Assembly (NCBI GenBank): GCA_964035545.1
Contig: OZ037766.1
Span: 1,798,001 to 1,862,000 of the forward strand
Length of the DNA: 64,000 nucleotides
Source: Bugula neritina
Lineage: Eukaryota > Animalia > Bryozoa
Direction of reading: 5' to 3'
Every line of letters starts with the position of its first letter. The stretch's first letter is position 1. Made by a program: the position numbers and the translations under genes. The notes under the pieces were generated by a model. The model had not been told where the DNA came from. It was given only the letters and a program-made list of their open reading frames with translations, and did not search any database. Below are positions 14,101 through 41,200 of the stretch, piece by piece.

Positions 14101-17100
14101 TTCATGTGAAATTAATTAATTATTTCAATAAGTTATCCCAAGTGTAGACTATTTGACCTCCATTTAAGGGCAGTGGTGGAGGAATTGAGATAGCATAGGT
14201 TCTTAAATTTCTCAATAAATTTTTGCTAAGGGAGTGGGTTAAAATTTTTGCTAGAGCAAAACTATTTTGCTACATTTCTAGTCTATAACGCAAGCTTTTT
14301 TCAATTTAACCATTAAACTGTACCTTACCCTTAAATTTAAGGATCTAGTTTTTAGAATTAATGCTATTGGCTCATTTTTAAAAACAAAGTGTGATAAATG
14401 TCATGCATCAGTGTTACAGAGTCTTATGATGGAGTTGTGTGCCCAAAACACTTATTTGGTTGTATTTGGTAGATGCTTTTACAGGGCAATCATTTGAAGG
14501 AAGAGAAATGAAGGTTATAAAAATCACATCTAATAATTCAACAGGAAACAAGTCGGCTGTGTTTGTAGAGGGGGGAGCACATGCCAGAGAGTGGATTTCC
14601 CCCGTATTTGTCAACAACCTGATTTACAAGGTATGTAGGCTAATATAGGAATTTTGTGAGTGGTTAGGAAGTTGCTTGAAGCAGCACCGAGCTGGCGGTC
14701 ACTAAGTGCATTAGGTCAGGGGTCCAGGAAACAACATAATTTTCCAAGCCCCCTTCCCAATTGCTTTTGAAGATTCGAGTCTAATTTAGAATCTGCCAAA
14801 TACCCACAAACCCTCTTATTGTTGATCGTCTTCCCACAATGCCATCTTGTTGTTGTCAGCTCATAGTTGAGTACGGTGCAGACGGCAATGTGAGTCTCAT
14901 GCTGGACAGTTATGACTGGTACATCCTTCCCCTAGCCAACCCTGATGGCTATCAATATTCACATGACTATGTAAGTATACAGAGTAAGTACACAGAGTAA
15001 GTATACATAGTAATTGCACAGAGTAAGTATACAGAGTATCTAAGCAAATCTTCCATCAAATCTTCTTTCAGGTTATTTTTAAAAAAAGTAAGTTGCTATT
15101 TAAGGTGATTATGTTGCGCAGTGTAAGTATATCACACATATACTTACACCTGAAGTGTAAGTATATGACACATGTATGTAGTGTTTTACCTATACCTCCA
15201 CCTGGTGCTATCTTAGGAGAGATACTGGAGAAAGAATCGCGCTACCACCATATTCAAGGGCTGCGTGGGAGTTGACTTGAACAGAAACTTCCCTTCTTTC
15301 TGGATGTGTAAGTTGGAGTTACTTTCCCTTCGCTGCAGTTATCCCTTTTTGTAGCACAAGTCGGTTTGGTTATTCTTACACACAAGTCATCAGTATTTAT
15401 ATATCAAGTTTATTTGTAGATAAGATTGTAAACTCACAAACATTATATATTACGTGAACATAAAATATTATAATCTAGAATGGGCGTACACTGTTTCGAA
15501 TTGAGTCTTTTATTTTCTGATGATAATTTTTATGTCGTAATTAAATTAATTCTGTTGAAGAAGCTGTATATTACTGATAAAACTTTCAGGAGTTCACATA
15601 ATGCACCAAATATAGACAAATTGTCTAATAATTTGTTTCAACATCTTTATAACTATTTTTATCCAATAAGAAACAAGTGACATGATCATGTATAAAATAT
15701 CCTGTAAATAGTATTTAGTTTATTCAAAACAAATGCTCCAGCAACTCACTTGATCAAGGTGACCTAAGATTCATAACTTCTAGCTAGCAGCCTGTGTTCT
15801 GCAAAAAAATTATTTCACAGGAAATGCAAAGTTCTATCCAAAGTTAGTTTTATAAGCACTTTAAAACACTTTCGCCCATCTAAACCATAAAATTTATTTG
15901 TTTAGAGTTGCATGAATGTCAAACTTTCTAACCAAACAGGAGACATGAGCTTGTAGAAGACCTTTCAGGGTATTTCACAAGTTGTATCGGCATTTCAGCT
16001 GACCACGTATATTCAAAACATCCTTGCGAAGACACATATGGTGGCCATTTCCCTGGCTCAGAGCCAGAAACCAACAATCTTGTGAAGTTCTTGCTTGGTG
16101 TCGACAGACTACACGTCTTTCTTTCCTTCCACTCTTACAGGAAAATGATTCTGATTCCGTGGAGTCATAAGATGAAACCGACGACTCATTACTCTGCTTT
16201 AGTAAGTATCAACTTGCCCAGTCATCTATCACAGTCTTCTGAAAAGACTAGCGAGAAAACTCCTGTTTTTAATTGGGTAGAGACTATTACTTTCACTTAT
16301 ACTGAAGCAAAGCGCTTTGATTCACAGAAGCTCCGTTAATAGTTAGATTGTCATTTTTAAAAACATTGATCTGTTCGTGTTGTTACAGAAAATAGCAGGA
16401 ATGGCTGCTGCTGATGCAATAGAGGCAGCCAACGGTGGCAAGTGGGTTGTTGGACTTGCAGGCGAATTGTTATCCTGTAAGTGGAATGTATATATACAAC
16501 TCCCTGCTAGTTACATTGTAGTGTATAGACAACTCCCTGCTAGTTACATTGTAGTGTATATACAACTCCCTGCTAGTTACACTGTAGTGTATAGACAACT
16601 CCCTGCTAGTTACATTGTAGTGTATAGACAACTCTCTGTTAGTTACATTGTCATGAATTAAACAGATCTTTTCAGGCTCAACCTTATAGTGAGTGAACTA
16701 AATTACTATAATTTTAATTGCTATAAAACCTAATGAAACCATATTTTCTTTAGCATACATTAACTGTAATTCACAGAATTATTTTATAAAATTAGACGCT
16801 CATATTGGTAGTTTTTTGATTGACCTCATTCAAATAATGTATTACTCTTTAGTTTGCAAAACAAAGTATTGTAGTAAAACTTTGCGGTTCAATATCTGTA
16901 ACTGGTTGTGTGTTGCCCACTATAAATAACTATTGACCCCATTAACTTCCTATTTATGTTTAGGTGACATACGTCAGCAGGCATTACTCATCTGCCTTGT
17001 GCTGACTATTAGATTTGTGGTCAGGTCATTGTGGTTGGGGTGGCTGTCATTCTTGCCCTACCTGTACGGGCTGGGTTGGTACCCTGAGGCTACCTAGTGA

Positions 17101-20100
17101 ATGTTTACTATGTTTTGGGACACAATCATTATAGCAGTTTATCGGTCTGCTAGGGACCCAGCAAGCTTTTAGATGATTGGACTTTACTGATGCCGTTATG
17201 AGTGTAGTTAGATAGGGCGGGTGAAAGTTAGTATTAATATATTTTATTCTAGTTCACCAATTTTACAGAAAACAAACACTTTACTGGCCAGAAAAGACAG
17301 CATTTTACACCAGGAATATTAAACAGGATGTTTTCTAACTCCTATCATTGGCTACAGCACACTTTCGCAACAAAATCCGGCCAATCACATTGTGGCACAT
17401 TGCCCCCACCCGGCAGGACCATCCCCTGACAAACATCCGGCTGTCCTCAGTCTTCCGATTGCGACACTACTGCGTACCCTAAGCGTGTGTTATTGTGCTA
17501 TAAAAAGGTCATTACCCTGCTGCTATGATTGTATAGTGAGCTCAATCAGTTATTTAATGATGACTATTGGCTGCTGTCGTGTGTAGTTCATTACACTCCC
17601 ACCTTGATTTTTTTGAAATTAAAAAGCGATAATATATGTGTATATACTAGGGTAGATATCTGCATGATTATATAAGAAAATTAGAAGCATGGTTGTATAT
17701 TTTTGTAGCTTAGCGTAATATAGCATAATACCTATAAAACTATCTTTCTGCCTTCTGCAGAAGTACAACCTTTTGAATAGGCCTGTCGATGGTCGCCGAG
17801 TTAAAAATCTGCTTACCTTTGTTATCAATTCCAGCGTTAGCCAGTTTTACTTTCACATTTCTCACCCTATCATCTGAACCTAGCTTGACTTCAGTGATTA
17901 TTCCTATGGTCCATTGATTTCTTGGTAGGTTTTCATCCACTATCATCACTATGTCGTTTTTGTTAACATCTTTTTGTGGCAGCTCCCACCTTTGTCGTTT
18001 CGTGATTTGGCCCAGATACTCATGTCTCCATGCGTTCCAAAAGTCACTAGCGAGCTGCTGCGATTTCCGCCACATCTTCTTACCATATATCTCAGTGTCG
18101 TCGAAGTTTCCAGGTGGTGCTGAAGTTTCTGCTGTCTTAGAAGTGATGAGGTGATTAGGAGTCAGCACGGAAATTCCATGATCATCTAGTGCACTTACTA
18201 TTATCGGCCTGCTGTTGACAGTTGACATTGCCTCATAAAAGGCTACGCGCAAGCCTGTAGTGCTCAACCGGTTTTTATATTTGCCTCCTAACAAAGCATT
18301 TAGCACTGCTTTGACACTACGAATTTGGCGTTCCCACACTCCTCCAGCGTGACTTGCTTGTGGTGTATTGAACACAAATTTGATATGCCGTTCCTGTAGA
18401 TACTTACCTAAAGCAGTGTTTGAGCTAATGGACTCCATTTCTCTCTTCAACTCATTGGATGCTCCAATAAAGTTCGTGCCTTGGTCGCAATAAATTGAGT
18501 GAACTGCCCCTCTAAGACAGATGAATGATCGTAAAGCGTTAATCAGAGAATCTGTAGTCATGTCGTCGAGGAGTTCCACATGCACGGCCCTAGAGTACAT
18601 GCATGTTAGCAAAAGCCCCCATCTTTTTATTTCAGAGCGTCTATCTCTAACCACAAATGGCCCAAAGCAATCCATGCCTATGTTGGTAAATGGGGGTGTT
18701 GGTTGCAACCTAACCGCTGGCAAATCTCCCATAATTTGGGTTTCGGGTTTTCCCCTGAGCTTCTTGCATGTGATGCATGTAGACAGTGTCGTGTTGATTA
18801 AGCTTTTAGCACCTATTATCCAATAACCCGCATTTCTTATTGCAGCTTGAGTGAATGATCGCCCTTGGTGGTGAACTTCACCGTGATAGTGCCGTACAAT
18901 AAGATTGGCTACATGTTCGTTCTTAGGCAAGATGATTGGGTGCTTTTCTTCAAAACTAAGAGCTTCGGAATTTTTTACTCTTCCTCCAATGCGCAGCACC
19001 CCAAACTGGTCAATGAATGGTTGAAGCTTGACTAATGCGCTTTTCTTGCTCAAAAATTCCCCAGCTTTAAGTGCTCTTATCTCCACACTGAAATGTTGCT
19101 GTTGAGTTTTCAGTATGACAGCCGTGCTTGCAGCTTTAAGGCTTTCCTGGTTGACTGGCTTTATTGACCATTTATTTTCAGCTGACTTGTGTATACCTTG
19201 TATTATAGCGATTGAGCGTATTAAGGTGCCCCAGGTAGAAAACTTGGTGAACTTTTGTGTAATGAAGGGAGTGGCAGCAGATGCCAATACTTGGACTTTC
19301 TTAAGTTCCGGATCTGATGGGTCAATAGGATAATTCTTTTCTTGGGGTTGCAGGAGTAGTTTCGGGCTTGTTTCAAGCAAAAATTTTGGGCCAGAAAACC
19401 ACATGGTGCTGGTTAACTGGTCACACCTTCTGCCCCGCGATGCTATGTCTGCTGGGTTTAAGCTGCTCGGAATGTGAAACCACTGTGATGAGCTTGTCCT
19501 TGACTTAATCAGTCGCACTCTGTTGTGGACAAAGGTGTTGAACCGCTTGCTTTCGTTTGTTATCCATGCCAGTGATATTTTGGAATCTGTCCAAAAGTAT
19601 TCGTCAGCAATGTCCATATCTAGTTCTGTCTTGAGAGTCTGACTCAATTGTGTAGCCATTGCAGCAGACATTAGTTCCAGGCGTGGTATAGTAAATAGTC
19701 CCTTTGATGGTATCACTTTAGATTTTCCAAGCAAAAGGGACACATGTACTTGTCCTCTGTTGTTAACCAGACGAATGTAGGAACACGCACCCATCCCATT
19801 TTCACTAGCATCGCAGAAGTGGTGTAGCTCTGCTTGAGCAGTTGAGCCAAAATCTTTTGGTCGAATACATCGTGAAATCTGAATTTCTTCTAAGGCCGGC
19901 AATTGTTCTATCCAGTTTGTCCATAATCTTGAATTCGTATCGTCTATTTTGTCATCCCAACCTAATTTCCCTTCGTTCACCTTTTGTAGAACGAGTTTCC
20001 CTTGCAAGGTGTATGGGGCAAGAAAGCCTAGAGGGTCGTAAAGCTGGCTTACTACTGACAGGATTCCTCTTCTGGTGTCTGGTTTATTTTTTATGTTGTT

Positions 20101-23100
20101 GACAAATTTGAAAGAATCCGTGCTCATTGACCACTGCAGGCCTAGGGTTCTCTGCTCTGGTAGGTTTCCGCTAAACAATTCTATGTCTTGAACCATTCTT
20201 TCTGATTCTGGTAGAGATTCGAGAACTTTTGCGCTGTTGGAGGTAAACTTATGTAGCCTTAAATTACCCTGTCTGCAGATTTCTGTTGCTTCCTTGATAA
20301 GCCCTGTGACTTCAGCTTCAGAACTAACGCTTGTCAACCCATCGTCAACGTAAAAATCCCGCTTTATAAACGATGTTGCTTTGTCGGAGATGTTCCTATT
20401 ATCATCCGCTACTTTGCGAAGGCCATAAGTTGCGACCGCAGGAGAAGACTTGGCTCCAAAAAGGTGCACTTTCATCCGGTATATTTTGGGCTTTCCCTGC
20501 TTGTCATGCCACAAAAATTGAAGATAATCACGATCTTTGGGCTCTACCAAGAAGTTATAAAACATCTTCTGAATATCACAACTGATAGCTATTTCCTCTT
20601 TTCTAAATCGGCACAAAATTCCCAGCAGTGAGTTCATCATGTCGGGTCCTGGTAGTAGATGGTCATTTATTGAAGTTCCTTGGTATTGAGCTTTGCAGTC
20701 AAAAACTACTCTAAGCTTCTGCTTCTTTGGGTGTGTGACAGCAAAATGAGGGATGAACCATGACTCCCCAGGTTTTCTTGACTGTGTCTGATCTACTGAC
20801 TCCGCTAACCCCGTATCAATTATTTCGTTCATGAATTCTGTATATTCTTGCTTAAGCTTTTCATCTTTTTCAAAGCGTCTGTACAACAGTTCTTGTCGTT
20901 TTTGTGCCTGTTGATAATTGTTTGGAAGAATCGGTCTAGTTTTGAATGGTAGAGGCATTTGATAGGAGCCAGACTCTAGTATGGTTGTCTCGTTGTCCAT
21001 GATGCTCAGGAATTTGGCGTCGTCTTGGGACATCCTAAGTAAAGTATCATGTGCTTCGTCGTGACCTTCTGGGGTGGTGGTGATAAAAGCACTTACTTTT
21101 GATCCATGCTTACTTTGCTCTTCAACACCAAACACAGCCCAGCCAAGTTCTGATCTGATTGCATATGGTTGGTTGTCCTCCCCTTTAATAGCTTCTAATG
21201 GAAATGATGCAGCTGAACAGTTAGCTCCTAGAAGTAGCCCAACAGGCACGTCTAATGATGGTGGTAAGGCATTTTCCAGAGAGCGCAAGTGCTGACATTG
21301 CTTGATGTTTATATTGCTTGCAAATGCTCCAGTAGAATTCGGAATGTGAGGCCACTCGTAGGCAGATGCAAGTTTAACTTGCCCACCGAAATACCCATTT
21401 AGTACCAAGTCACCGTACAGACTTATATCTTGCTTCGCTGATTCCCCAGACATAGTTTCCATGTCGATAAGCTTTTTCTGAAGGAATTTGGGTTTCAGCT
21501 TGTTTACTAACGCAGTCGTGATAAATGAGTGATCTGAAGCTGAATCTAGAATCGCGTAAACCAAAATGCTATTGGATGGATTTGATGCGGTTGAAACGTA
21601 CACCGGCATCCCCATGTTAAACAGTTGCATGTGGTCACTTGATTTAGTACTTTTATTGGAGAGCTTAGTACTTACATGGCTTTCTTCCTGTGATGATAAG
21701 GAAGCTCCGGTTTTATCCGTGTTCATATCCGTATGACTTGAGGTTTCTGCTTTTGAGTTAAATGATTCTTGTGAATCTGGGATCATGCTGCTACGCTGTT
21801 GGCTCCAATCTTCTTTTGTTTTATGAAGGCAAGTTGGATGACCTGGCTTGTTGCATTTTCTGCAATTATTCTTGTTCTTCATTTTGCAGATTTGCCATCC
21901 ATGACCGGGTTCACCACAGGCATAGCATAGGTTTTTACTCCTTAAAAAGTTGATTCTATCTTCGTATGGCTTTCCGAATAGCTGGAAGCAGTGCGCAGTG
22001 GGATGTGACTCTAAACAGTTTAAACATGGTTTCTTGCTCACTGCTGTTGTAGCGAATGACCTGATAGGAATTTTTGGTTTACCACTTTGATCTTTGTTGT
22101 TTGCTTGTGTATGCATACGTTTCTGCGATGATGGAGGATTTGATGCTTTGTTGTTAAACAGAGGTAGCGATTGCAGTTCTGCTTCTTCGGTGATGAAACA
22201 TGCAAATTCATTGAATCCGGGGTATCTCTGCTCAGATTTTTAAGTTTGATAAACTTTACCAGCCCACTTTCTCTTAATCCATTCTGGTAGTTTTTCACAT
22301 AGTTGCTCGTTTATTTGTGGGTCGTTAAGTATTTTCAGCTCTTTAATGGATTGCATACCACTCACACATTGCTGCAAATAGTCAGCATACTTTTGAAGAG
22401 CTTGTGCATCTCCACCTTGAACTTTTGGCCACTTGCTTAATGTATCCCTCATTGTCCTTCCTACATCAAACATACTGCCATATCGTTCTTTCAGCTTCTG
22501 TCTTGCGTGCATGTAAGATTGCTCTGTTCTGATATAAAAGTCTCCATTTATGCATTCTCTGGCGCTTTCGCTAAGATATTTTTTAAGATATCTTAGTTTT
22601 TCTGTTCCTCTGACTATGCCTTGCGACTCAAAGAACCCATCAATGTCGCATTCCCAATCAGCGAATAGAAGTGGATCCCCTTGAAAAATTTCGGGTTCTA
22701 TATCGATTTTTCTTGTGTGTTTGATTGACTGCTGAATACAGTCTGCCAGTTGTTGGATTGATGAGGGAGTTTCTTCTGGGATAGACGATGTCATTGTTCT
22801 AGGCCGTGGAGATGGGATTATATTGTAGATGGAAGCAGGTGCCTCTATTTGAATAGGCTGCCTGTTAGTTGTAGAGTTGGTGATATGAGGGGTTATCTCT
22901 TGTTGCTGAGATATTGTTGGAGATAGCGTTGGGAGTGGGATTTGTCTCTCTTGCACATACTTTCTTGGAGCTGGCAGTGGTGAAGCTGTTGGTAAAGAAG
23001 ATATCTCTGGCTGTAGGCATCTTCTTGGAGTAACCATCGAAGAAGGGGTTAATGGGGTTATCCTCCTTGGAACTGGTGTTGGTTTAACTTGTTGTCCAGT

Positions 23101-26100
23101 ACTTCCACGATTTCTACATTTCATGTATTCCTCGAATTTTCTTTGTTCTTCTGCCACAAGCCTTTTCTTTTGTTCCAGCCCTTCTATCAGCTGAGCTTCT
23201 TTTTGCTGTGCTTGTTCTTCCTCTAACTTATTTTGAAGTGCATGTATTTTATTTGAAATGTGTTGTTTTGTTGATTCTACAGCGCTTACATAAGCTTCAA
23301 AATTTAGTAAAATACTGTTCTCTACTGCATTTTCGGACAGCATATTCAGCTTGGCGTAGTCATCTGTAATGACTCTAGCATTTAGTTCAAGTCGATCGCA
23401 GGCTTGTGTCAACTGTTCGAGAGTAATGTTATCAGTTTCTAATGAACTCATTACCTCATCTGCTGCTCGAATTTCTTTATTACATGCAGCATACAATGTA
23501 AATGCAAGCTCATTTTTCTTGCTTTCGATACTAAGATATGAGGGCTTGATTGACCTAACTGGTCTATTGTTTATGGCGTAAGTGCTAGCTGGCTGCTGAG
23601 ATAAACTTTGCTCTAATTCATCGTTAGTCATGTCTAAAATACTATGATGTTCTTCCATAGTGCAAGTGATGCTTTGTTGGTAAACTGCTTTATGATTCGT
23701 AGTTATATATAGGCAGCAGTAGCAGCAGCAGCTTGATCTAGTGTCTATTTATAGTTTTGTTACGCTCTGATTAGTTTGAATGCGATTAGCTTACAAGGTG
23801 GTCGTGAACGAACATAAACACAACAACAGCTCGGTATCTAACTACAACTGCGTCACTACACAATCAGGTATTTGTTATGGGCAGCACTTGAGATAGTTTG
23901 TGGTTTTCTAACAATGATTAATGAAAATGTGATTAAAATGCAAAATAGACTAGGAATTTAGCTGATGTTAATTAGGATAATTGTTGTGAAAGGCCAAAAA
24001 ATGTGTAAGCGGAGGCTAGCAGAAGCCCGTTCCGAATGCGCTAAAGACGGCCGCAGTCGAAGAAAGCAAACCACAAAATGTGACCACCGTAAATATTTGC
24101 AAAAAGTGCGTTAGCCAATGATAGTATGTTGAATTAAAATTCTTAAAAATCCCTGGTGTATATGCTGTGTTCTGTTCAGTTTACAAATTTAATTATAACT
24201 CATAAAATTAAAAGAAAAAGTCTATAATATGACTGCTTAATGTTTCAACTGCTAGCAAGGATTAAACCACAATGAAGTTGTGTGCACAAATAAAAGAAAT
24301 ATACACCTGTTAACTATTCAGGTACTTATCCTAATATACAGAAAAGTATAACCATCTAACAAGCAATATAAACTTGGTATAAAATATGATTAATTAGCCT
24401 GAGTATGTCTTTGAACTCACAAGTTAGAGTTTGAAAAGTTCTTACTTTACTTTTGACTGGTGCTTCTCACCAAGCAGGTTGTGGGGCTCTACGGCGTCTC
24501 CACCAAGCAGGTTGTGGGGCTCTACGGCGTCTCCACCAAGCAGGTTGTGGGGCTCTACGGCGTCTCCACCAAGCAGGTTGTGGGGCTCTACGGCGTCTCC
24601 ACCAAGTAGGTTGTGGGGCTCTACAGCGTCTCCACTAGGAACGTTAGTCTTGACCAAGCCTTCTTAGCCAAAAGACTTCACTATAGCAGTTTATCGGTCT
24701 GCTAGGGACCCAGCAAGCTTTTAGATGATTGGACTTTACTGATGCCGTTATGAGTGTAGTTAGATAGGGCGGGTGAAAGTTAGTATTAATATATTTTATT
24801 CTAGTTCACCAATTTTACAGAAAACTAACACTTTAGCTCATAAGCCAACACCGTGAAGTCTGTAATAATAGTAAAATTAGGGTAAGAACTATAGTTTGAA
24901 TACAGTATGACTGAGTAATATGTAAAATGTAATATATAATATAATATGTATATAATATGAAGCATGACAAGACAAAATGTATTAAAGGCTATTAACGCAG
25001 CACATAAAATAATTGCAATTAATTAAAAACAGATTACAAGAAAAGATAAAAGAGTATTGCGAACCTTTTGTTCTCCTTTAGCTTGCCTTAAACTGGCTTC
25101 TGATTATTGAATAAAGTGTAATAATATAATTATAAAACTCATGAGAGCACTTCATGTTTTAGTGGCTAGAAACACTTTACTGGCCAGAAAAGACAGCATT
25201 TTACACCAGGAATATTAAACAGGATGTTTTCTAACTCCTATCATTGGCTACAGCACACTTTCGCAACAAAATCCGGCCAATCACATTGTGGCACATTGCC
25301 CCCACCCGGCAGGACCATCCCCTGACAAACATCCGGCTGTCCTCAGTCTTCCGATTGCGACACTACTGCGTACCCTAAGCGTGTGTTATTGTGCTATAAA
25401 AAGGTCATTACCCTGCTGCTATGATTGTATAGTGAGCTCAATCAGTTATTTAATGATGACTATTGGCTGCTGTCGTGTGTAGTTCATTACAATCATTGTG
25501 GTAATTTTTAGGGACAATAGTCGTTTATGCAATATGTTTTTGCCTGGTACAGTAACAACAACCAGAGTATATAAACACTTTACAAACTTAATACAATCAG
25601 TTGGCAGCACTCTTTAACAAAACTGTACTTATTATTTTATTCTTCTACTGGTTTGACAATATATTATTTACTGGCACAGTTTATGAAGGACCCAAGAGGT
25701 TAGTTACTTTTATTCATATTATTATCTGAATTATTATTTTATAATAAATTTACTTTATGGTTTTTGTGAGCATTACTTTAATATTTTTAACCACATTTAT
25801 ATGCATGCAATCATTTATATAACTTTTGCCTTTCTTATTTAGTTTTTACCAGCAAGTTTATCACAGCAAGTTTATCAGAGAATTTATCAGCAAGTTTACC
25901 AACAAGTATAACCAATAAACTTCTGCGTTCGGAAATCCTGGTTTAATTCATACGGGGCCAGTAACAGTAAAAACTCTAAGTCTACACCGGAGTTCCAAGG
26001 CAACTCCACTCAAGTTTACAGTAGAAGGTTAAGTCTACTTCAGAGTTCACGGGCAACTCATCTCAAGTCTACAGTAGAAGGTTAAGTCTACTTCAGAGTT

Positions 26101-29100
26101 CACGGGCAACTCATCTCAAGTCTACAGTAGAAGGTTAAGTCTACTTCAGAGTTCACGGGCAACTCATCTCAGGTCTACAGTAGAAGGTTAAGTCTACTTC
26201 AGAGTTCACGGGCAACTCATCTCAGGTCTAGCACATCGGTTCAGTGCTAGGTCAAGTCAACGCTTCACACGTCACGTGGTTTTGTGACCGTATTCAGTCC
26301 ATCGGGAAGCAATCAAACATTTTTGGATTATATTTACACACCAGCAACCCCAGCTTCAATTCAACTCCACCGGAGACGGAAATCGCCCTGCTACCAAGCT
26401 TCTTATTGGTGAGTTACTGTTACCAGGCATTTTTTAGATTAGCTTAGTATTATTTTTTGTAATTGTAACTTTGATTGTGTCTCAACACTGGGGTGCATCT
26501 CGGGTAGCACAGGGGTACTCGGCCATCTTTGGTATTGGTGGGTGCAGTTTGCAGTTGCTCTTCTTTCACTTTGATGACCCATTTCTTGGTCGGCATCAGT
26601 CTTGTCTAATGTCTGTTTAGTATTTCATTGAGACAAAATAGGAACTCAATATTCGGATAGCAATTATATACATGATTTTAAGTTAGGGCATTAAAACATT
26701 AAATTTACTATGGCCACACCTCCTATTGCTCCCCGCAGAAGCACTAGAATTAGGCAGCTGTCACAATCAGCTCAGCAACAATTAGTTAGCACTAGCAAAG
26801 CTAAAATTGATACACTGATTTCTAAATTTAACAACTTGATTAAAAAGGAGCTTGATGATGATTTAATTGTGTTAATTAATAATTTGGCAGATCAAGCTAA
26901 ATCTACCCTTGATAACCTGCTGACACAGGTCAGTGAACAAGATAACAGCATAGATTTTTATGTTCAACAAGTCAATATTATATGCAAGCGTGCTCATGAC
27001 TTGTCTCTTACAGAGGCAGAGGGCACTATTTACAATACTGTCTTTGGCTCGTCAAATCATTCTCATATCTCTCTAGCTAATGAACAATTTGAGGCAGCTA
27101 AAACTGCAATTGAACTTGAATCACTTGAAAGGCGCACAGCAATTCTAGCTAAACGTGAGCAACTAGAGTTGCAAACTCAAAAACTTAAGGATAAGCAGCG
27201 CTTGCAGCAGGCTAGGTTAGATATAATATACAGTCATGGATTAGATGAGAGAGATGAAATAGCTGCAAATCTTAGGGCCACGCAACTTGGTTCAACCCCT
27301 GTCCCTGCTGCACGTAGTAGTAGGGGAACTCCATCAATTTGCTCTCTCACTTCTGAAAATTTCACAGAATATATACAGCCATCTCCACGGCCCATCCCTA
27401 AGCCAAGGTTCAAACCACAACCCCTCCCACGCTCAAGTTCTTCAAAATCGTTGCCGGTTCCAAACCCTCCAGCAACAAATACACTAGATAGCGCTTACAT
27501 GTTAGCAGAGTGTCTAACTAAAGCCCTAAACACTCAAAGGGCACCCATACCTGAGCCACCTGTTTTTAGGGGAAACCCATTAGAATACCCTACTTGGAAA
27601 GCTGCACTTACTTCATATATGGCACACATTAATGTCTCTAACGAAAGCAAGCTGCACTATCTTCTCAAGTATGTAGGCAATTCAGCTGCTGAGGGAATTA
27701 CTAGCTATGCACTTGTACATGATCCAAAAGCATACAATACAGCAATTAACACACTTGATGAGCGTTTTGGGTCTAGCTATACTATTGCTGAAGCATTTAG
27801 AAATAAATTAGACAGCTTTCAACGTTTTAAAGCTAATGATGCCTCTGCCTTGAGAAAATTTTCTGACTTTTTACTTCAATGTCAGTCAGCCATGGGCTCA
27901 TTTCATGAATTAGCAGTACTCAATGACCCTCATACCAGTGTAAACCTATGTCAGAAATTACCTGACTTTTTAGCCAACAAATGGAAAGAAAAAATAGTGG
28001 AATTTAGGCAGAAATACGGAAAATACCCTCAGTTTTCAGAGTTCAGTAAATTGATGAAATATCACTCCGACATCCAAAATGACCCTGTAGTTCTAGGAAT
28101 GAGTAAAGCAGCAAATAGCAGTTCAAGTATTTTGCATCCTAGAGTAAACAAACCAGTTGACACTAGAAATACATTTTTCACATCTAGAGCTAGCACATAT
28201 TACTGTTCATATTGTGATGTACTAGGACATACCCTCAGTAGGTGTAATTTGAAATTCGCAAAATTAAGTGCTTGTGATCAAGAAAGGTTTATCCGAAGCA
28301 ATAATTTATGTTGGAAGTGCCTTGAGCCTGGTCATAGGTCTAACAAATGTACCACTGCATGCAAATGCCAAGTAAAGGGCTGTGGCAAGCAGCATCCTAC
28401 TTCAAGACATTATCAAGTAGTTAGAACTTCATCATCTGACCAAGTCACTATGCATAGCAATTCTAACCATAGCCAGCCCAATACACCTTCACTCAATCAT
28501 ACTCAACCAACCTCACCAGCTCATTTACAAACTTCTGTAGATCACACTATCACCAATAGCACAATAGGTGTCTCTCAAGTACCACATGCTTCCTCAACTA
28601 AAACAGCTAACACACAAACTCTAACTAGAAACAAAGATGGTCTAAAATCAAGCATCATTCCAGTTTGGCTTTCCACTTCACCCAATTCAGATAAGGAACA
28701 CCTTGTGTATGCTCTTCTTGATAATATGAGTGATACCACATTCATTAGTGACGAAGTAGCAGACATTTTAGATATACCTCATCAGTCTGTAGCAAATCTC
28801 AAGATCAACACAGTAAATCCAACCAATCATAACGCAAGCACACAAAGCAGATTGTTCAAAGAGTTGACTATAAAGGGTTTCCATGCTGATCAACGTATTT
28901 CATTGGTAGATGTTTATACTATACCAGAAATTCCTCTAAATAGATCGCACATTCCAACTAAAGAATCAGCTGCTGTTTGGGACCATTTACAACACATAGC
29001 TCATGAAATTCCAGAACTACAAAACTGCCCAATTGGCATGCTCATAGGGTATGACAACTCTCATGCTCTCATTCCTTTAAAGTCAGTAGCTGGACCAAAT

Positions 29101-30956
29101 TCTAGAGACCCATATGCGGTACAAACTCCACTAGGATGGAGTGTAGTAGGCGCTACTAATCCCCACATGAAACATGAAATTGTTAAGCTCTCAAACTCCC
29201 CCCAAACTTCAGCAGACGTAAATGCAGTCTCATTTGCATGCTTTTCCAAATCTCTAAAACCCACCAGCGTTCTACACAAACTGCAACAAAATTTTAGAGA
29301 AAATCAGACTATCGGCACTCGGCTTGCTCTTTCCCAAGATGATAAGCAATTTTTATCCACACTACAAACTGGCATTTCTCAAACTGAAGATGGCACGCCT
29401 TTGACTCCTAACCATTCTCTAGCTATGAAATCGAAAATTATTTTTCCTCCACCTGGTCAGTTTGATGAAAGTGGTACACATTCTCGAAAGCGCTGGCGTG
29501 TGGTTCAAAGCCTCGCAAATCAATTTTGGTCAAAATGGCGCGAGAGCGCGGTACAAAAATTAGTCATGCTCTTCAGGCCTTATATCAAACATCAAACTTA
29601 ATATCAATTCTCCATGCTTCCCAAATTATGCATATACATACAGTAATAGTTATAGTATTTAATTTCCAGCTGCCGCAGCAAATTAAAGGGGGGAGTGTAA
29701 CTGGTTGTGTGTTGCCCACTATAAATAACTATTGACCCCATTAACTTCCTATTTATGTTTAGGTGACATACGTCAGCAGGCATTACTCATCTGCCTTGTG
29801 CTGACTATTAGATTTGTGGTCAGGTCATTGTGGTTGGGGTGGCTGTCATTCTTGCCCTACCTGTACGGGCTGGGTTGGTACCCTGAGGCTACCTAGTGAA
29901 TGTTTACTATGTTTTGGGACACAATCATTGTGGTAATTTTTAGGGACAATAGTCGTTTATGCAATATGTTTTTGCCTGGTACAGTAACAACAACCAGAGT
30001 ATATAAACACTTTACAAACTTAATAAAATCAGTTGGCAGCACTCTTTAACAAAACTGTACTTATTATTTTATTCTTCTACTGGTTTGACAATATATTATT
30101 TACTGGCACAGTTTATGAAGGACCCAAGAGGTTAGTTACTTTTATTCATATTATTATCTGAATTATTATTTTATAATAAATTTACTTTATGGTTTTTGTG
30201 AGCATTACTTTAATATTTTTAACCACATTTATATGCATGCAATCATTTATATAACTTTTGCCTTTCTTATTTAGTTTTTACCAGCAAGTTTATCACAGCA
30301 AGTTTATCAGAGAATTTATCAGCAAGTTTACCAACAAGTATAACCAATAAACTTTATTTTTAACCACATTTATATGCATGCAATCATTTATATAACTTTT
30401 GCCTTTCTTATTTAGTTTTTACCAGCAAGTTTATCACAGCAAGTTTATCAGAGAATTTATCAGCAAGTTTACCAACAAGTATAACCAATAAACTTCTGCG
30501 TTCGGAAATCCTGGTTTAATTCATACGGGGCCAGTAACAATATCTTTCAGAAAAAGTAATAAATTGGAGTGACGTAAACTCATTATTACAATACTACTCT
30601 CCAGCACTGCTATATACTTGCACATCCCATTTGATTATAGTTTTTTATTGTGTTACATCACAGATAACGCAGCAGGCACGTCGCTAGATTGGGCGTACGC
30701 CAACACTGAAGCCAAGTTTGTTTTCACATTTGAGCTGCCACCTTCACAATCACCTCCTGGTTTCGTCCTACCAGAAAGTAGCATCAAGTCTGTAGTGGAT
30801 ACAACATGGCCCGGAGTCGCGACTCTTGTTAAGACTATCATCAACACGCCAGCATTAGAAGACAAGTATTTCGTATCCAAAGGCTCTAGCAAAGGAATAG
30901 ATATGTGTTATTGTGAGCTAATATTCATGTTGCTGTTTGCTTTCTGCTATGTTTAG
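11195..30956 (+). CDS. M14A metallocarboxypeptidase paralog 2 (CPA-like specificity pocket, hydrophobic C-terminal tail), about 10 exons, 14.2-kb last intron
   Basis: Signal peptide MAFSEVICLISLLVSHSIA; GVDFW; GGAHAREWI; NPDGY; RYWRKNR; GVDLNRNF; FHSY; last exon 30664-30956 gives (Y)NAAGTSLDWAY...FELPP. Intron positions parallel paralog 1; last intron 16478-30663. Confidence 0.9.
12823..13012 (+). repeat. 25-bp minisatellite (GTACAGTAACTGAGTACACAGTGAA)x~7 next to a splice acceptor
   Basis: Direct reading; acceptor CATAG ends at 13025. Confidence 0.9.
14971..15038 (+). repeat. 13-bp repeat (GTAAGTATACAGA)x~5 starting at a splice donor
   Basis: First unit is the GTAAGT donor after the ...SHDY exon. 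Confidence 0.8.
16490..16650 (+). repeat. 33-bp minisatellite x~5 near the donor of the last intron
   Basis: TATACAACTCCCTGCTAGTTACATTGTAGTGTA units. Confidence 0.9.
17740..23658 (-). pseudogene. BEL/Pao gag-pol polyprotein interrupted by one in-frame TAA at 22240-22242
   Basis: ORFs 22240-23658 and 17740-22116 are in one frame, joined by 41 sense codons. Gag (PEIFQGDPL, LKERYG), three zinc knuckles, protease YAILDSASD, RT FYVDDG, RNase H HFCDAS/TIPRLEL/NPADIASRG, integrase MDCFGP/CDQGTNF/GGVWER, terminal RPIQKVVLL. Confidence 0.93.
24468..24635 (-). repeat. 33-bp tandem repeat x5 in the 5' leader of the inner element
   Basis: CCACCAAGCAGGTTGTGGGGCTCTACGGCGTCT units on the + strand. Confidence 0.95.
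24669..24681 (-). promoter_or_regulatory. Non-tRNA primer-binding site of the inner element (GTGAAGTCTTTTG)
   Basis: Abuts the 5' LTR end; no TGG; reverse complement of predicted LTR splice junction CAAAAG|ACTTCAC. Confidence 0.7.
25967..25977 (+). promoter_or_regulatory. Non-tRNA primer-binding site of the outer element (GTAAAAACTCT)
   Basis: Abuts the 5' LTR end; no TGG; reverse complement of predicted LTR splice junction AGAG|TTTTTAC. Confidence 0.7.
25978..26230 (+). repeat. 53-bp tandem repeat x~4.5 in the 5' leader of the outer element
   Basis: AAGTCTACTTCAGAGTTCACGGGCAACTCATCTCAAGTCTACAGTAGAAGGTT units; period 53 (26031 to 26084). Confidence 0.92.
26710..29601 (+). CDS. BEL/Pao gag-protease fused in frame to integrase C-terminal remnants; RT, RNase H and integrase core deleted
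   Basis: 963-aa ORF: PEPPVFRGNPLEY, LDERFG, zinc knuckles (CSYC...H....C, CWKC...GH....C, CQVKGCGKQHPTSRH), YALLDNMSD, then LSQDD...GISQTEDG joined to PLTPNH...PPPGQF...RWRVVQSLANQFWSKW and VQKLVML. Confidence 0.9.
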   Translation: MATPPIAPRRSTRIRQLSQSAQQQLVSTSKAKIDTLISKFNNLIKKELDDDLIVLINNLADQAKSTLDNLLTQVSEQDNSIDFYVQQVNIICKRAHDLSLTEAEGTIYNTVFGSSNHSHISLANEQFEAAKTAIELESLERRTAILAKREQLELQTQKLKDKQRLQQARLDIIYSHGLDERDEIAANLRATQLGSTPVPAARSSRGTPSICSLTSENFTEYIQPSPRPIPKPRFKPQPLPRSSSSKSLPVPNPPATNTLDSAYMLAECLTKALNTQRAPIPEPPVFRGNPLEYPTWKAALTSYMAHINVSNESKLHYLLKYVGNSAAEGITSYALVHDPKAYNTAINTLDERFGSSYTIAEAFRNKLDSFQRFKANDASALRKFSDFLLQCQSAMGSFHELAVLNDPHTSVNLCQKLPDFLANKWKEKIVEFRQKYGKYPQFSEFSKLMKYHSDIQNDPVVLGMSKAANSSSSILHPRVNKPVDTRNTFFTSRASTYYCSYCDVLGHTLSRCNLKFAKLSACDQERFIRSNNLCWKCLEPGHRSNKCTTACKCQVKGCGKQHPTSRHYQVVRTSSSDQVTMHSNSNHSQPNTPSLNHTQPTSPAHLQTSVDHTITNSTIGVSQVPHASSTKTANTQTLTRNKDGLKSSIIPVWLSTSPNSDKEHLVYALLDNMSDTTFISDEVADILDIPHQSVANLKINTVNPTNHNASTQSRLFKELTIKGFHADQRISLVDVYTIPEIPLNRSHIPTKESAAVWDHLQHIAHEIPELQNCPIGMLIGYDNSHALIPLKSVAGPNSRDPYAVQTPLGWSVVGATNPHMKHEIVKLSNSPQTSADVNAVSFACFSKSLKPTSVLHKLQQNFRENQTIGTRLALSQDDKQFLSTLQTGISQTEDGTPLTPNHSLAMKSKIIFPPPGQFDESGTHSRKRWRVVQSLANQFWSKWRESAVQKLVMLFRPYIKHQT

Positions 30957-32397: not shown

Positions 32398-35300
32398 ATG
32401 GTGAAGAAATGTATTTGTCAAATTTGTGTTTGTGGGTAAGTCATAGTTATTTTAACAAATTATTCACATTCAATTGTGAATCAAAAAAGGCTATCAAGCT
32501 ATTATTGATCATATAATTTTTATTAAAATTTATTATTTTTTAACTAAAAATTATATTACCATTTCATTAAAAATCTTATGGTTGATATTTTATGAACGGT
32601 TTTACTGTTACTAGTTTTAATAAATTGATTACTAAAATGCATTGTTCATCAACTTGGTTGTTTAAATATGACATTATCAATCTGTTGTAATTTAAGTTTA
32701 ATATTTCAAAAACACACAGTGTTGCTCATTTTTAACTCAACAAGTTTTAATAATTTAGAGCTTGGTATATTTCCCTCTCCAGTGACAGTTCATTTTTTAA
32801 TACACTAAGCAAAATATTTCAATTAAAAGACAAGTTTTCTTATTATAATCTGTTTTAAGATGTTGTAAGCTTAACTGCATATAAATCTAAACTTAAAAGA
32901 CAGACTAAAGAAAAAATAACTCTTAAATGCAAACTTTAGTTGAACTATATTTTCTTTATGTAGTAAAGCGTTTTATTTGGGCTAATAGCCTTCTGTTTGC
33001 CAGATTATACTGCACAAATTTATAACCACACTATAAGAAATTTGTCAAATAACCTTGAACAAACTAACGTATTCCTAGTTGCAATAATTAGTGCAGTATG
33101 CTAAATATTGAAAGAAATTATTTGTTTGTCTGCAATAACAATCAAAATTATTAAAAAACATTGTGAATGTGTGAGCTAGCGAGCGAGTGAGTGAGCTAGC
33201 GAGCGAGTGAGTGAGTGAGTGAGTGAGTGAGTGAGTGAGTGAGTGAGTGAGTGAGTGAGTGAGTGAGTGAGTGAGTGAGTGAGTGGGTGATTGGGTGAGT
33301 GAGTGAGTGAGTGAGTGAGTGAGTGAGTGAGTGAGTGAGTGAGTGATTGGGTGAGTGAGTGGGTGAGTGATTGGGTGAGTGAGTGAGTGATCATAAGGGA
33401 GCTTATTTTCGTTAGTGCAAATTTGAATGTTAGCATAAGTGGGTTTTTGTATGCGGCCTCACCAAGTGGCTACAGCAACACTGATAATTAAATCCTGCTT
33501 TTTCTTCTTTGCAGCCAAATCTCATCAGAGTTAGTGCTAATGTCTGCTAATAAAATATTTTCAAGTAATGATTGTTATTGTAGCAAAACAAAATGGTGAT
33601 AAATTTTAAATGGTATTTTATAAAAAAAATTTGAATATGTATCTCAATATTTAAAGCATTTCCTAATAAAAAATATATTATAGCAAGTTTGAAGGCATTC
33701 ATTGTAAACTATTATTAAATTATAGCCCTGTGAGGCAGTTGGTGTTAAAGAATACACATTGAAACAAATTTTTTTATTTATATCAAACTGTATTTTGAAT
33801 GTTTAAGTAGAACGTGGTAATATTATTTGGGTGAAGAGCAAGAGGGGGAGAGGATCTATTCAATTGACACAGAATAACTGTTGCTAAGCAACTGTAACAC
33901 TATCTAATGTATATTTTGATTCGTGTGTAAACATGCACTTTGCATGACACTCTGTATTGTGTCTTTATATTGTGAGCATTGATCAATAATTAATATAATA
34001 CACTTTGTACTGCAAGACTGCTAGTAGCTTAAGAAATTATATTAATTGCATAACAACGAATAATACAGGTATTCACTATTGATCTTGATTCTATTAGCTC
34101 TCTATAACTGAAAAGTCACTAAATTTGCAGTTATTTTAATTACTTACCAATATTTTGTGAGCAATTTGATTAGCTATAAGCACTTAAATATTATTCCAGA
34201 GTCAATGCAACTTATGTCACTAACCTTACTATGATGGTATATGTGTGTGTGCAGCATCAAACTTAGATACATTGAATGAAAATGTCTAACAACAATTTAA
34301 TTTTTAGTAGATTATAAAAAAGCTTATTTTATTATCTAAAAATATTTTATTTCATTATAAATGTTATCAAAAATTGGAACACTTTTACTAAAACTTGTCG
34401 CCTGTGTAAATAAATTTATTTTTTTATAAATCCAATATTATTTACTAGTAAAAACTATTTTGGTTCTCACGCAGACGGCATAGATGTCCACACAGGCCTT
34501 TCACAGCCAAAGGCTCAGGTCCATGTGCTTTCTCAGAGTATCATGACGAATATAAAAAGAAAGATGGCGGAAAGTTACCTAGTTTTAAGCCAACACACCA
34601 GCCAATCAAAAACAGTGATCCAATGTCTGATAAGACAACACAGCGGTGAGTGTTCATATATAAGTAATAGGAGTATGAAATGTAATATTATACTAACTTT
34701 CTCACCAATTAGCAGAGTACTTGTAGAGTACACTCTACTTTAGTATTAAATAGACATATTAACAGAATTCACATGATTTGTGAGGACTTGATATGAAATA
34801 CATACATATCTGACATGTTTTACTAAATGCAAATATAACAAAGTAAACATGATGAATGCATGCTTTTATATAACAGAGAAATGAAATCTAGTAGTTGTGA
34901 TTATGTTTCAAAGTATGGAATAAAACTATTGCCTCTAATATATACACATAACACATGTAATGTATAGGCTCACACATGCATTGTGTGTGTTCACATATAA
35001 TATATTGACACAGATGTAATGCGTATACCAAGACAAATGTTACATATAATATACTCAAATCGTAACATATACAGTATACTTCCACATTTGTAGCGTATAT
35101 TACTAACATTGTAACGCATATATCGTAATGCTATATTTGTATATTCAGAGTTGACTTCATAAAACATCATGGGATGAGACCAGTGTTTAGGCAACCAGAA
35201 CAATATATCAAACCTGGTGGAGACATCGATACAATGACCTCTTACAAAAAGGACTACGTTCCTAAAGACGTAGCGCCTCCCAAGGCTTTTCGGAGAGATG

Positions 35301-38252: not shown

Positions 38253-41200
38253 CTACCTCTTAGACCAAAGAGGCGGCACTTCCTTTGGTCTGACATTGCG
38301 AGAAGTGGTGGTCACATGTTCTACTGGTGTATACAGAGTAGCGTCACTATCTATTCCACTTTCTCTGCTTGCGTACCGGTTCTGGCCTTGACCTGAACAG
38401 GTAGTAAACAGTAATATCTCACCTGTAAATACTAGTCATCTCACCTGTGCGTACTAGTCATCTCACCTGCACACACTAGTCATCTCACCTGCACATACTA
38501 GTCATCTCACCTGCACATACTAGTCATCTCACCTGCACATACTAGTCATCTCACCTGCACACACTAGTCATCTCACCTGCACATACTAGTCATCTCACCT
38601 GCACACACTAGTCATCTCACCTGCACATACTAGTCATCTCACCTGCACACACTAGTCATCTCACCTGCACATACTAGTCATCTCACCTGCACATACTAGT
38701 CATCTCACCTGCACATACTAGTCATCTCACCTGCACATACTAGTCATGACACATTCTGAAAAATTCTTGTATAAATTCACATCATAATTGTGAAAGCTAA
38801 GCTGGCTCATAAAAATCGAGTATTAAAAATCAGATTGTTTTTGTTAAATTTTATTTACAAAATTGAAGTTCTACACCAAAAAGCTAAATTTTAATATTAT
38901 TAAAAGTCAATTTTATATCATTAAAATTAAAGTCATACTCCTGAAAGTTGAGTTATAGTTGTGAAAGTTAAGTTACTCCACAGAAAGTCAAGTCAACATT
39001 CTACTTACCAATCAATACTCGAATTGGTGCCTCTCTGCTAGTCAAGTCTGTGATACCAGAGTCTCCAGACTTACTGGGAGCTCGGCTAGGGACGATAGTG
39101 AACGCTCCAGAAGTGTGACCCCCAGGTCTTCTCCAAGGCCCTGAGTCTAAGTCAGCAGAAGTAAAGGAGGGAACATCTTCCTAGGAATATTCAGAGAGAC
39201 TCAACTATGTGTTGGTGTTGCTTGACTGAAGCTGAGTTTATATTCTTATATTCGACATTTGCATATCAACATTGTTACACAACGTCCACTACCCCCAGCC
39301 AACGTAATGATACAGAAGTGATGTCTAGGTGGTACTAAGTGATGTAATGATACAGAAGTAATGTCTAGGTGGTACTAAGTAACGTAATGTACAGAAGTGA
39401 TGTCTAGGCGGTACTAAGTAATGTAATGATACAGAAGTAATGTCTAGGTGGTACTAAGTAATGTAATGTACAGAAGTAATGTCTAGGTGGTACTAAGTAA
39501 TGTAATGATAGAGAAGTAATGTCTAGGTGGTACTAAGTAATGTAATGATACAGAAGTAATGTCTAGGTGGTACTAAGTAATGTAATGATACAGAAGTAAT
39601 GTCTAGGTGGTACTAAGTAATGTAATGTACAGAAGTGATGTCTAGGCGGTACTAAGTAATGTAATGATACAGAAGTAATGTCTAGGTGGTACTAAGTAAC
39701 GTAATGATACAGAAGTAATGTCTAGGCGGTACTAAGTAATGTAATGATACAGAAGTGATGTGTGGGTGGTACTCACGTCTAGAATCTGTTCAGCTCTCCT
39801 TATACACTCTTTTATTGAATTTTGGTCATCTTCAGCATTATTTGAATTATCTCTGCAACAGTTTAAAATTAAATTTTCTAATAAAGAACATAAAATACAC
39901 TAACAGGTTAAATCCACTTGAAAAATGAAGGAAGAGTTGCCGTAAAATGAAAGAATAAATGCTGTAAGATGGAGGAAAAGAAGCTGTAAGATGAAGGAAG
40001 AGAAGCTGTAAGATGGAGGAAGAGATGCTGTAAGATGGAGGAAGAGAAGCTGTAAGATGGAGGAAGAGAAGCTGTAAGATGGAGGAAGAGAAGCTGTAAG
40101 ATGGAGGAAGAGAAGCTGTAAGATGGAGGAAGAGAAGCAGTAAGATGAAGGAAGAGAAGCTGTAAGATGGAGGAAGAGAAGCTGTAAGATGGAGGAAGAG
40201 AAGCTGTAAGATGGAGGAAGAGAAGCTGTAAGATGGAGGAAGAGAAGCTGTAAGATGGAGGAAGAGATGCTGTAAGATGGAGGAAGAGAAGCTGTAAGAT
40301 GGAGGAAGAGAAGCTGTAAGATGGAGGAAGAGATGCTGTAAGATGGCGGAAGAGAAGCTGTAAGATGGAGGAAGAGATGTAGTAATTACCTAGGCGAGAA
40401 GGAGTGACTGTTCTGCTTGTTCAACCAATGGTAGACGTGCTCTGGATAAGTGATGTCGGCTGACAACTCTTCAGAAAAGTCAGCAACAGACCTCAACTTG
40501 TCTATCTGTTCTCTCGTACCATTTCCTGTATAGTAATCATACTCAATGTCAACATTATGGAGTTTAATTAAATTAAATAATAACATTCAATTTATTAATC
40601 AAAACAATTTTTTAAATGATAACATTCTATAAAGATTATTTAGTTCAATCAGTTTTTGGTAAAAATTATCAAGAGAATAAAAGTCAAATACACTAGCAAA
40701 TTAATAAATAAATGTATACAATACATAATCACTGTGTATGCATTTACCTGATTTAGGAGTCATCCTCTCTTTGGGATTTGAAACTTTTTCAATTCTAACA
40801 CAGAAGCAGGATTCATCCCCCTCTTCTATTAGCTGTGACATCATATCCAGTTTCTGCTTAGGGGTGGGACTTGCGCTGTTGCATATCCTTTCAAGTTTCT
40901 CTTTGTTGGTTACTGGGTGATACGGCAGGTTGTAGTTCTGTGGAGTTACGTAATCTCCTAAAGACAGGATGTTGAGCCCCTCAGCTGCCACAATATCAGG
41001 AGGAACGAGAGATGGTGTGGCATGTTCAGTTACCAGAGTGGTAGTAGATTGAGCAGATAATTCTGATATAGTCTGAGTTGGCCCTTTACTTGAGATTGTA
41101 GTCTGATTTGGCCCTTTACTTGAGATTGTAGTCTGATTTGGCCTTTTATTTGAGATTGTAGTCTGATTTGGTCTCTTACTTGAACTTACAGTTTGATTCA

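Follow-up and report, generated by a model that had tools for sequence, protein, structure and literature searches.

In a BEL/Pao retrotransposon of the bryozoan Bugula neritina, the 13 nt that directly follow the 5' LTR are the exact reverse complement of the junction that would form if a candidate 205-nt intron were spliced out of the element's own LTR. The observation is real and not a product of chance, and the correspondence recurs, with differing sequences, in related families of this and other species. Self-priming in these BEL/Pao elements is very likely. We put at roughly 0.6 the probability that minus-strand DNA is primed by the element's own spliced leader, and not by a tRNA, a reading that draws on comparison of sequences.

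The inner element belongs to BEL/Pao

The window, a stretch of 64,000 nt, contains one LTR element inserted into the LTR of another. LTR-LTR alignment delimits a 5' LTR of 810 bp for the inner element (24682..25491, minus strand, TGTAATG...GCTATA) and a 3' LTR at 17130..17595 on the same strand, with a 5-bp target-site duplication, ATGAT. The LTR ends at the same terminal base (24682) in other copies from the genome, which measures 216 Mb and whose closest named protein matches are to the bryozoan Watersipora subatra. A polypurine tract, AAGGTGGGAG, was placed by LTR alignment at 17605-17596 (minus strand). ORF and domain searches identified a gag ORF of 472 aa (22240..23658, minus strand) with DUF1759 (PF03564), and a pol ORF of 1458 aa (17740..22116, minus strand) with RVT_1, a Pao-type Peptidase_A17 and DUF5641 (matches to PF05380, E=3.5e-47; PF18701, E=8e-22; and RVT_1). 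Because its ORFs carry Peptidase_A17, DUF5641, RVT_1 and DUF1759, the inner element is a BEL/Pao element (Belpaoviridae), and its two LTRs, target-site duplication and polypurine tract are those of this group. The same domains place it outside the Tf1/sushi clade of Ty3/gypsy.

A 344-bp deletion between 9-bp direct repeats, two copies of TAAAGTGTT, has shortened the 3' LTR of the inner element, with a junction near 17273. The equivalent stretch of the 5' LTR is 25170-24827, so that the end of the promoter, exon 1, the candidate intron and the start of exon 2 (all described below) have been taken out. The deletion is private to this LTR, since other genomic copies retain the stretch; microhomology deletion and template switching are candidate causes.

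The post-LTR site complements a junction within the element's own LTR

Read on the minus strand, the LTR ends in GCTATA and is followed directly by the primer-binding position GTGAAGTCTTTTG (24669..24681), a 13-mer that starts GTGAAG and lacks TGG, as the initial annotation had reported. That annotation had also claimed that removal of 25064-24860 produces CAAAAG/ACTTCAC (the slash marks the junction), the exact reverse complement of the 13-nt site, and a second reading of the sequence gave the same result. Its figure for the unspliced LTR was likewise correct: the post-LTR site is complementary to the element's own LTR transcript region over only 9 contiguous nt, and over 13 nt across the junction.

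The candidate intron (24860..25064, minus strand) is 205 nt long and AT-rich, with GT at 25064-25063, AG at 24861-24860 and a pyrimidine-rich 3' end, and homologous GT-AG segments are present in all related families. It would separate a predicted exon 1 of 37 nt (25065..25101, minus strand), which ends CAAAAG (25070-25065) and whose 5' end is set by promoter motifs, from an exon 2 that begins with the 7 nt ACTTCAC (24853..24859, minus strand). The proposed 3' end of the primer falls after ...CAC. The promoter motifs are a TATA-like motif (25128..25134, minus strand) and, about 33 nt downstream of it, the initiator-like motif TCAGAAG, with a predicted +1 at 25101; the donor follows about 70 nt after the former and about 37 nt after the latter. 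An AATAAA polyadenylation signal (24795..24800, minus strand), which is conserved in related LTRs, occurs 59 nt downstream of the acceptor, and because of its position the intron was placed within R. If the TATA-like, initiator-like and AATAAA motifs are all used, then the candidate intron would lie in the R region of the inner LTR. In alignments of diverged LTR copies, the block comprising promoter and exon 1 was the best conserved, and the interior of the intron had indels, with a large insertion in one copy. Judged by the promoter motifs, splicing would bring the complement to about 31-44 nt from the cap.

The outer element has the same arrangement

The outer element, on the plus strand, represents a family distant from that of the inner one, with 34% gag identity. 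Its 5' LTR starts at 16897 and is split by the inner element; sequence comparison assigned 25492..25966 to the 3' part of this LTR and 29696..30539 to the intact 3' LTR. In the 5' LTR, exon 1 would end with AGAG at 25698 (...AGAG/GTTAGT), followed by a candidate intron at 25699-25842 and an exon 2 that starts with TTTTTAC at 25843. The primer-binding position, GTAAAAACTCT (25967..25977, plus strand), complements the element's own junction, AGAG/TTTTTAC, over 11 nt when spliced and 9 nt when unspliced. Canonical TATA and initiator motifs precede exon 1, and in the 3' LTR TATATAAA (30000-30007) and TCAGTT (30029-30034) precede the donor GT (30131) by about 100 nt. The 3' LTR also has a 141-bp tandem duplication (30214-30542), through which the acceptor and the first part of exon 2 are present twice; the 5' LTR has one copy of the duplicated stretch.

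Primer site and junction covary across families and species

It followed from the initial annotation that primer site and junction should change together among related elements, and this covariation is seen in 11 intron-bearing families from at least three species. The split architecture recurs with differing sequences in five families of the B. neritina genome (including the outer element), three W. subatra elements, two contigs and one sea-urchin element, and over the intron-bearing families the matches are 10-13 nt spliced versus 8-10 nt unspliced. Contigs P0001, P0020 and L089, which end inside the LTR or lack the primer site, were left out of the comparison. In family 2 (9 copies), exon 1 ends ...CTAAAG/GT, exon 2 begins ATTTCAC and the primer site is GTGAAATCTTTA, with matches of 12 nt spliced and 9 nt unspliced; compared with the inner element, both sides of the junction are altered and the primer site is altered to match. 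The three W. subatra elements are young (LTR pairs 99.7-100% identical) and pair over 12, 10 and 10 nt when spliced and 9 nt each when unspliced. The values are 12 and 9 nt for the Logan DNA contig L090, which has C:G at the covarying position, 10 and 9 nt for the ENA metagenome contigs L092 and L093, and 11 and 8 nt for the element of the sea urchin Lytechinus pictus, which has a strong GTAAGC donor and a 726-nt intron.

Compensatory pairs occur at defined places. Exon position -5 forms A:T, T:A or C:G with primer-site position 12, depending on the family, and exon position -3 forms A:T or G:C with primer-site position 10. The first post-LTR base pairs with nucleotide 7 of exon 2 in every family (nucleotide 8 in family 5), and among the families compared the primer sites start GTRAA, none with TGG. 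Across all families the proposed cut always follows YAC, and GG or CG mostly comes next; this may be a preference of RNase H or a requirement of the LTR edge.

A post-LTR site complementary to the element's own LTR was found in 13 families, and the split version was seen in bryozoans and one sea urchin. The complement is contiguous, and has no splice signature, in the snail Littorina saxatilis (11 nt) and the tunicate Styela clava (10 nt). Judged from these elements, a self-complementary primer site looks general in this part of BEL/Pao. In a BEL/Pao element of the fly Musca autumnalis (L105:4394-4810), a 10-nt stretch that begins after a 3-nt spacer downstream of the LTR complements LTR positions 134-143 contiguously; a TCAGTT motif lies about 35 nt upstream of these positions. 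Self-priming may extend to insects.

Prospective prediction of two donors

Families 3 and 5 were assessed by pattern searches only. For family 3, the acceptor (exon 2 TTTTTAC) and the primer site (GTAAAAACTTTA...) were in hand first, and the donor TAAAG/GT was predicted from the primer site alone. The search located it 171 nt ahead of the acceptor in 21 copies and gave 0 control matches. The spliced match is at least 12 nt, versus 9 nt unspliced; because a pattern search for a match further upstream of the exon 1 end gave none, it is 12 or 13 nt. For family 5, whose primer site is GTAAGAAACTC, both the exon-2 site and a GAG/GT donor were predicted from the primer site beforehand. The exon-2 site, TTTCTTAC, was found in 6 copies and the donor, GCAAGAG/GT, in 26, with 0 matches in controls, and the pairing is 11 nt spliced and at least 10 nt unspliced.

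The extent of pairing was compared with a null model in which the tail of the primer site was randomised with its observed T-rich composition and the best of all GT sites was taken. This gave p=0.009 for the inner element and p=0.0025 for eight families combined, the null being conservative and the families related and not fully independent. The combined p falls further when the two prospective tests are included, with prior chances that we estimate at roughly 0.007 and 0.03. A chance match is rejected by these randomisation p values and by the two prospective tests. A loose genome-wide scan for the signature returned many chance matches, so the signature is specific only if it is anchored at a known LTR end.

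The same pairings could be read as self-priming of the Tf1 type, with no part for splicing. The RNA would then start at or near the "acceptor", or the leader would serve unspliced; pairing would be confined to the 8-10 contiguous nt (AG plus 7-8 nt), and the matches to exon 1 would be fortuitous or driven by composition. A contiguous complement is indeed present in every family and is sufficient in Littorina and Styela. The acceptor is preceded, at a distance of 25-30 nt, by AT-rich motifs that resemble a TATA box, such as the TATATAA of the outer element. For four families, the junction lengthens the 9-nt unspliced match by a single nucleotide, and the extra pairing across the junction is largely that of an A-run with a T-run. 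However, this account leaves unexplained the compensatory changes across the junction, the two donors that were predicted and then found, the coincidence of the best-matching GT with the best consensus donor, and an LTR copy that has no intron (the last two are described below). In addition, the unspliced match in intron-bearing families never passes the AG, whereas the spliced match always does, and the 8-9 nt available without splicing are fewer than the 10-11 nt of the intron-less relatives. We consider Tf1-like priming from unspliced RNA unlikely, and favor priming by the spliced leader.

The interrupting segment resembles a spliceosomal intron

Every family has GT and AG at the two edges of the break in pairing. 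When the 23-61 GT sites of an LTR are ranked as consensus donors, the one that best fits the primer site comes first in 6 of 9 LTRs; donors carry +5G or +3A+4A in nearly all families, and acceptors are YAG behind pyrimidine runs. The segments thus have the GT-AG borders, consensus-like donor and pyrimidine-rich 3' end of spliceosomal introns, and their borders are kept while the interior diverges.

In one solo LTR, L016 (G000:C7:7761014-7761333), the stretch that runs from the donor to approximately the acceptor is missing, and all other LTR copies are split exactly where L016 has no segment. L016 stands alone in this: its exon-2 start is altered (ACTAAC versus ACTTCACGGTG in its relatives), and a search with it as query found no further intron-less LTR copies. 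In young copies, both LTRs invariably retain the intron.

The two half-sites could also be brought together in unspliced RNA by bipartite pairing, in which the primer site would bind both the last bases of exon 1 and the first bases of exon 2, with the intervening 140-290 nt looped out and no need for splicing. Such pairing explains the two-sided covariation equally well. It does not account for the copy that lacks the segment, nor for the fact that in all families the gap has GT and AG precisely at its edges, together with a consensus-like donor and a pyrimidine tract. The segments are AT-rich (GC 23-30%), are no more structured or stable than shuffled sequences and have no closing stem in five of seven cases. 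We regard bipartite pairing as quite improbable, and the segment as more probably an intron that would be spliced before priming.

No tRNA or Rfam RNA was found at the other sites of the 13-mer

Priming by a host small RNA, whether a tRNA fragment or another species, would conform to the ICTV profile of the Belpaoviridae, which gives tRNA priming from an 18-nt site that pairs with the 3' terminus of tRNA-Arg or tRNA-Gly (PMC8742986). The elements described here share with canonical BEL/Pao the gag and pol domains, the LTRs, the polypurine tract and the 5-bp target duplication, but differ in their primer sites, which start GTRAA, lack a tRNA-like TGG and follow the element's own LTR. The site of the inner element, which starts GTGAAG, is not complementary to the 3' end of any host tRNA in the set scanned, a set that is not exhaustive. 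The 13-mer occurs at 10 sites in the genome, versus 13 for a control, which is chance frequency. The initial annotation had raised the possibility that a host tRNA or fragment matches the site; none of the other nine genome sites of the 13-mer is a tRNA or an Rfam RNA. A host primer is disfavored because the primer sites differ from family to family, each tracking its own LTR. Together with a chance match, we judge this explanation to be very improbable. The initial proposal that the primer is the element's own spliced RNA is supported by the covariation and by the absence of a matching host RNA at the other 13-mer sites; the splicing step and the cut after ...CAC remain predictions of the model.

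A model for priming by a spliced leader

In the mechanism that we propose, transcription would begin in the LTR, upstream of the short exon 1, and the GT-AG intron in R would be removed by splicing. The junction between exon 1 and exon 2 would then be complementary, over 10-13 nt, to the site directly after the LTR, and the spliced leader could pair with that site on its own RNA or on another RNA packaged with it. A cut 7 nt into exon 2 (8 in one family), after the conserved YAC, would release the leader in a Tf1-like manner, and its 3' OH would be extended by reverse transcriptase, as in Tf1.

Because young copies keep the intron in both LTRs, this scheme requires either an unspliced 3' R or priming in trans, and the splice model therefore needs an extra assumption to account for intron retention. 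Under the first option, strong-stop DNA primed in cis would end at the cut and, after transfer, copy the unspliced 3' R. Under the second, spliced RNA would prime unspliced genomic RNA in trans. Self-priming in this group does not in principle call for splicing, since the complement is contiguous in the snail (11 nt) and tunicate (10 nt) relatives.

A broader version of the model can be formulated, to which we give slightly less than even odds. According to this version, an entire BEL/Pao clade of bryozoans and echinoderms, with unspliced cousins in molluscs, tunicates and perhaps flies, would self-prime and dispense with tRNA priming; in the lineages that bear the intron, reverse transcription would start only on RNA from which the cap-proximal R intron had been spliced, and the intron of the 3' R would stay unspliced and be copied into both LTRs. 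If so, nuclear splicing would act as a licence for reverse transcription.

Relation to known priming systems

Reverse transcription of LTR elements is taught as tRNA-primed, with self-priming of the Tf1 type as the one exception. Tf1/sushi elements of the Ty3/gypsy group reportedly self-prime, according to the work of Levin and co-workers. The Tf1 RNA supplies the complement in one piece, as its first 11 nt, and the primer is presumably released by RNase H. The elements described here resemble Tf1 in that they have no tRNA site, in that the post-LTR site complements their own transcript within the LTR, and in a pairing of about 11 nt. They differ in superfamily, being BEL/Pao, and in the complement itself, which is interrupted by a candidate GT-AG intron and placed where exon 1 ends, so that splicing would be needed to build it.

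A splice donor within the R region of the LTR is also found in some retroviruses (deltaretroviruses and foamy viruses), in which the acceptor lies far downstream in the body of the genome and subgenomic mRNAs are made. In the present elements, by contrast, donor and acceptor would both lie inside R, and the junction matches the primer site. Copia is primed by an internal fragment of initiator tRNA-Met. It has in common with our proposal a processed RNA fragment as the primer and a site without the usual TGG; however, the copia primer is half of a host tRNA, whereas here the complement is in the element's own LTR.

Tf1/sushi self-priming is mentioned in two earlier papers (PMC5443660, PMC3601003), and primer sites are not discussed in a further survey (PMC3118150). 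In the library of papers that we searched, there was none on self-priming in BEL/Pao or on a primer site that spans an LTR splice junction. If the proposal is correct, assembly of the primer complement by splicing of an LTR intron would be a new way to make a primer, one by which replication would be tied to RNA processing. It would also account for the failure of tRNA-based annotation to find the primer sites of many BEL/Pao elements from marine invertebrates.

Repeats in the leaders and elsewhere in the window

Tandem repeats lie downstream of both primer sites in the window. In the leader of the inner element, repeat analysis identified five copies of a 33-bp unit (24468..24635, minus strand), and five copies of a 53-bp unit (25977-26241) are found just downstream of the primer site of the outer element. 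A GACGC..GTAGAGCC-like motif recurs in the leaders of family 2 and contig L089. The leader repeats and this motif may be packaging or dimerisation signals. Three further arrays in the window, at 33127-33438, 38350-38818 and 39222-39746, have periods of 8 bp, 22 bp and 40/79 bp, respectively, and are unrelated to the two elements.
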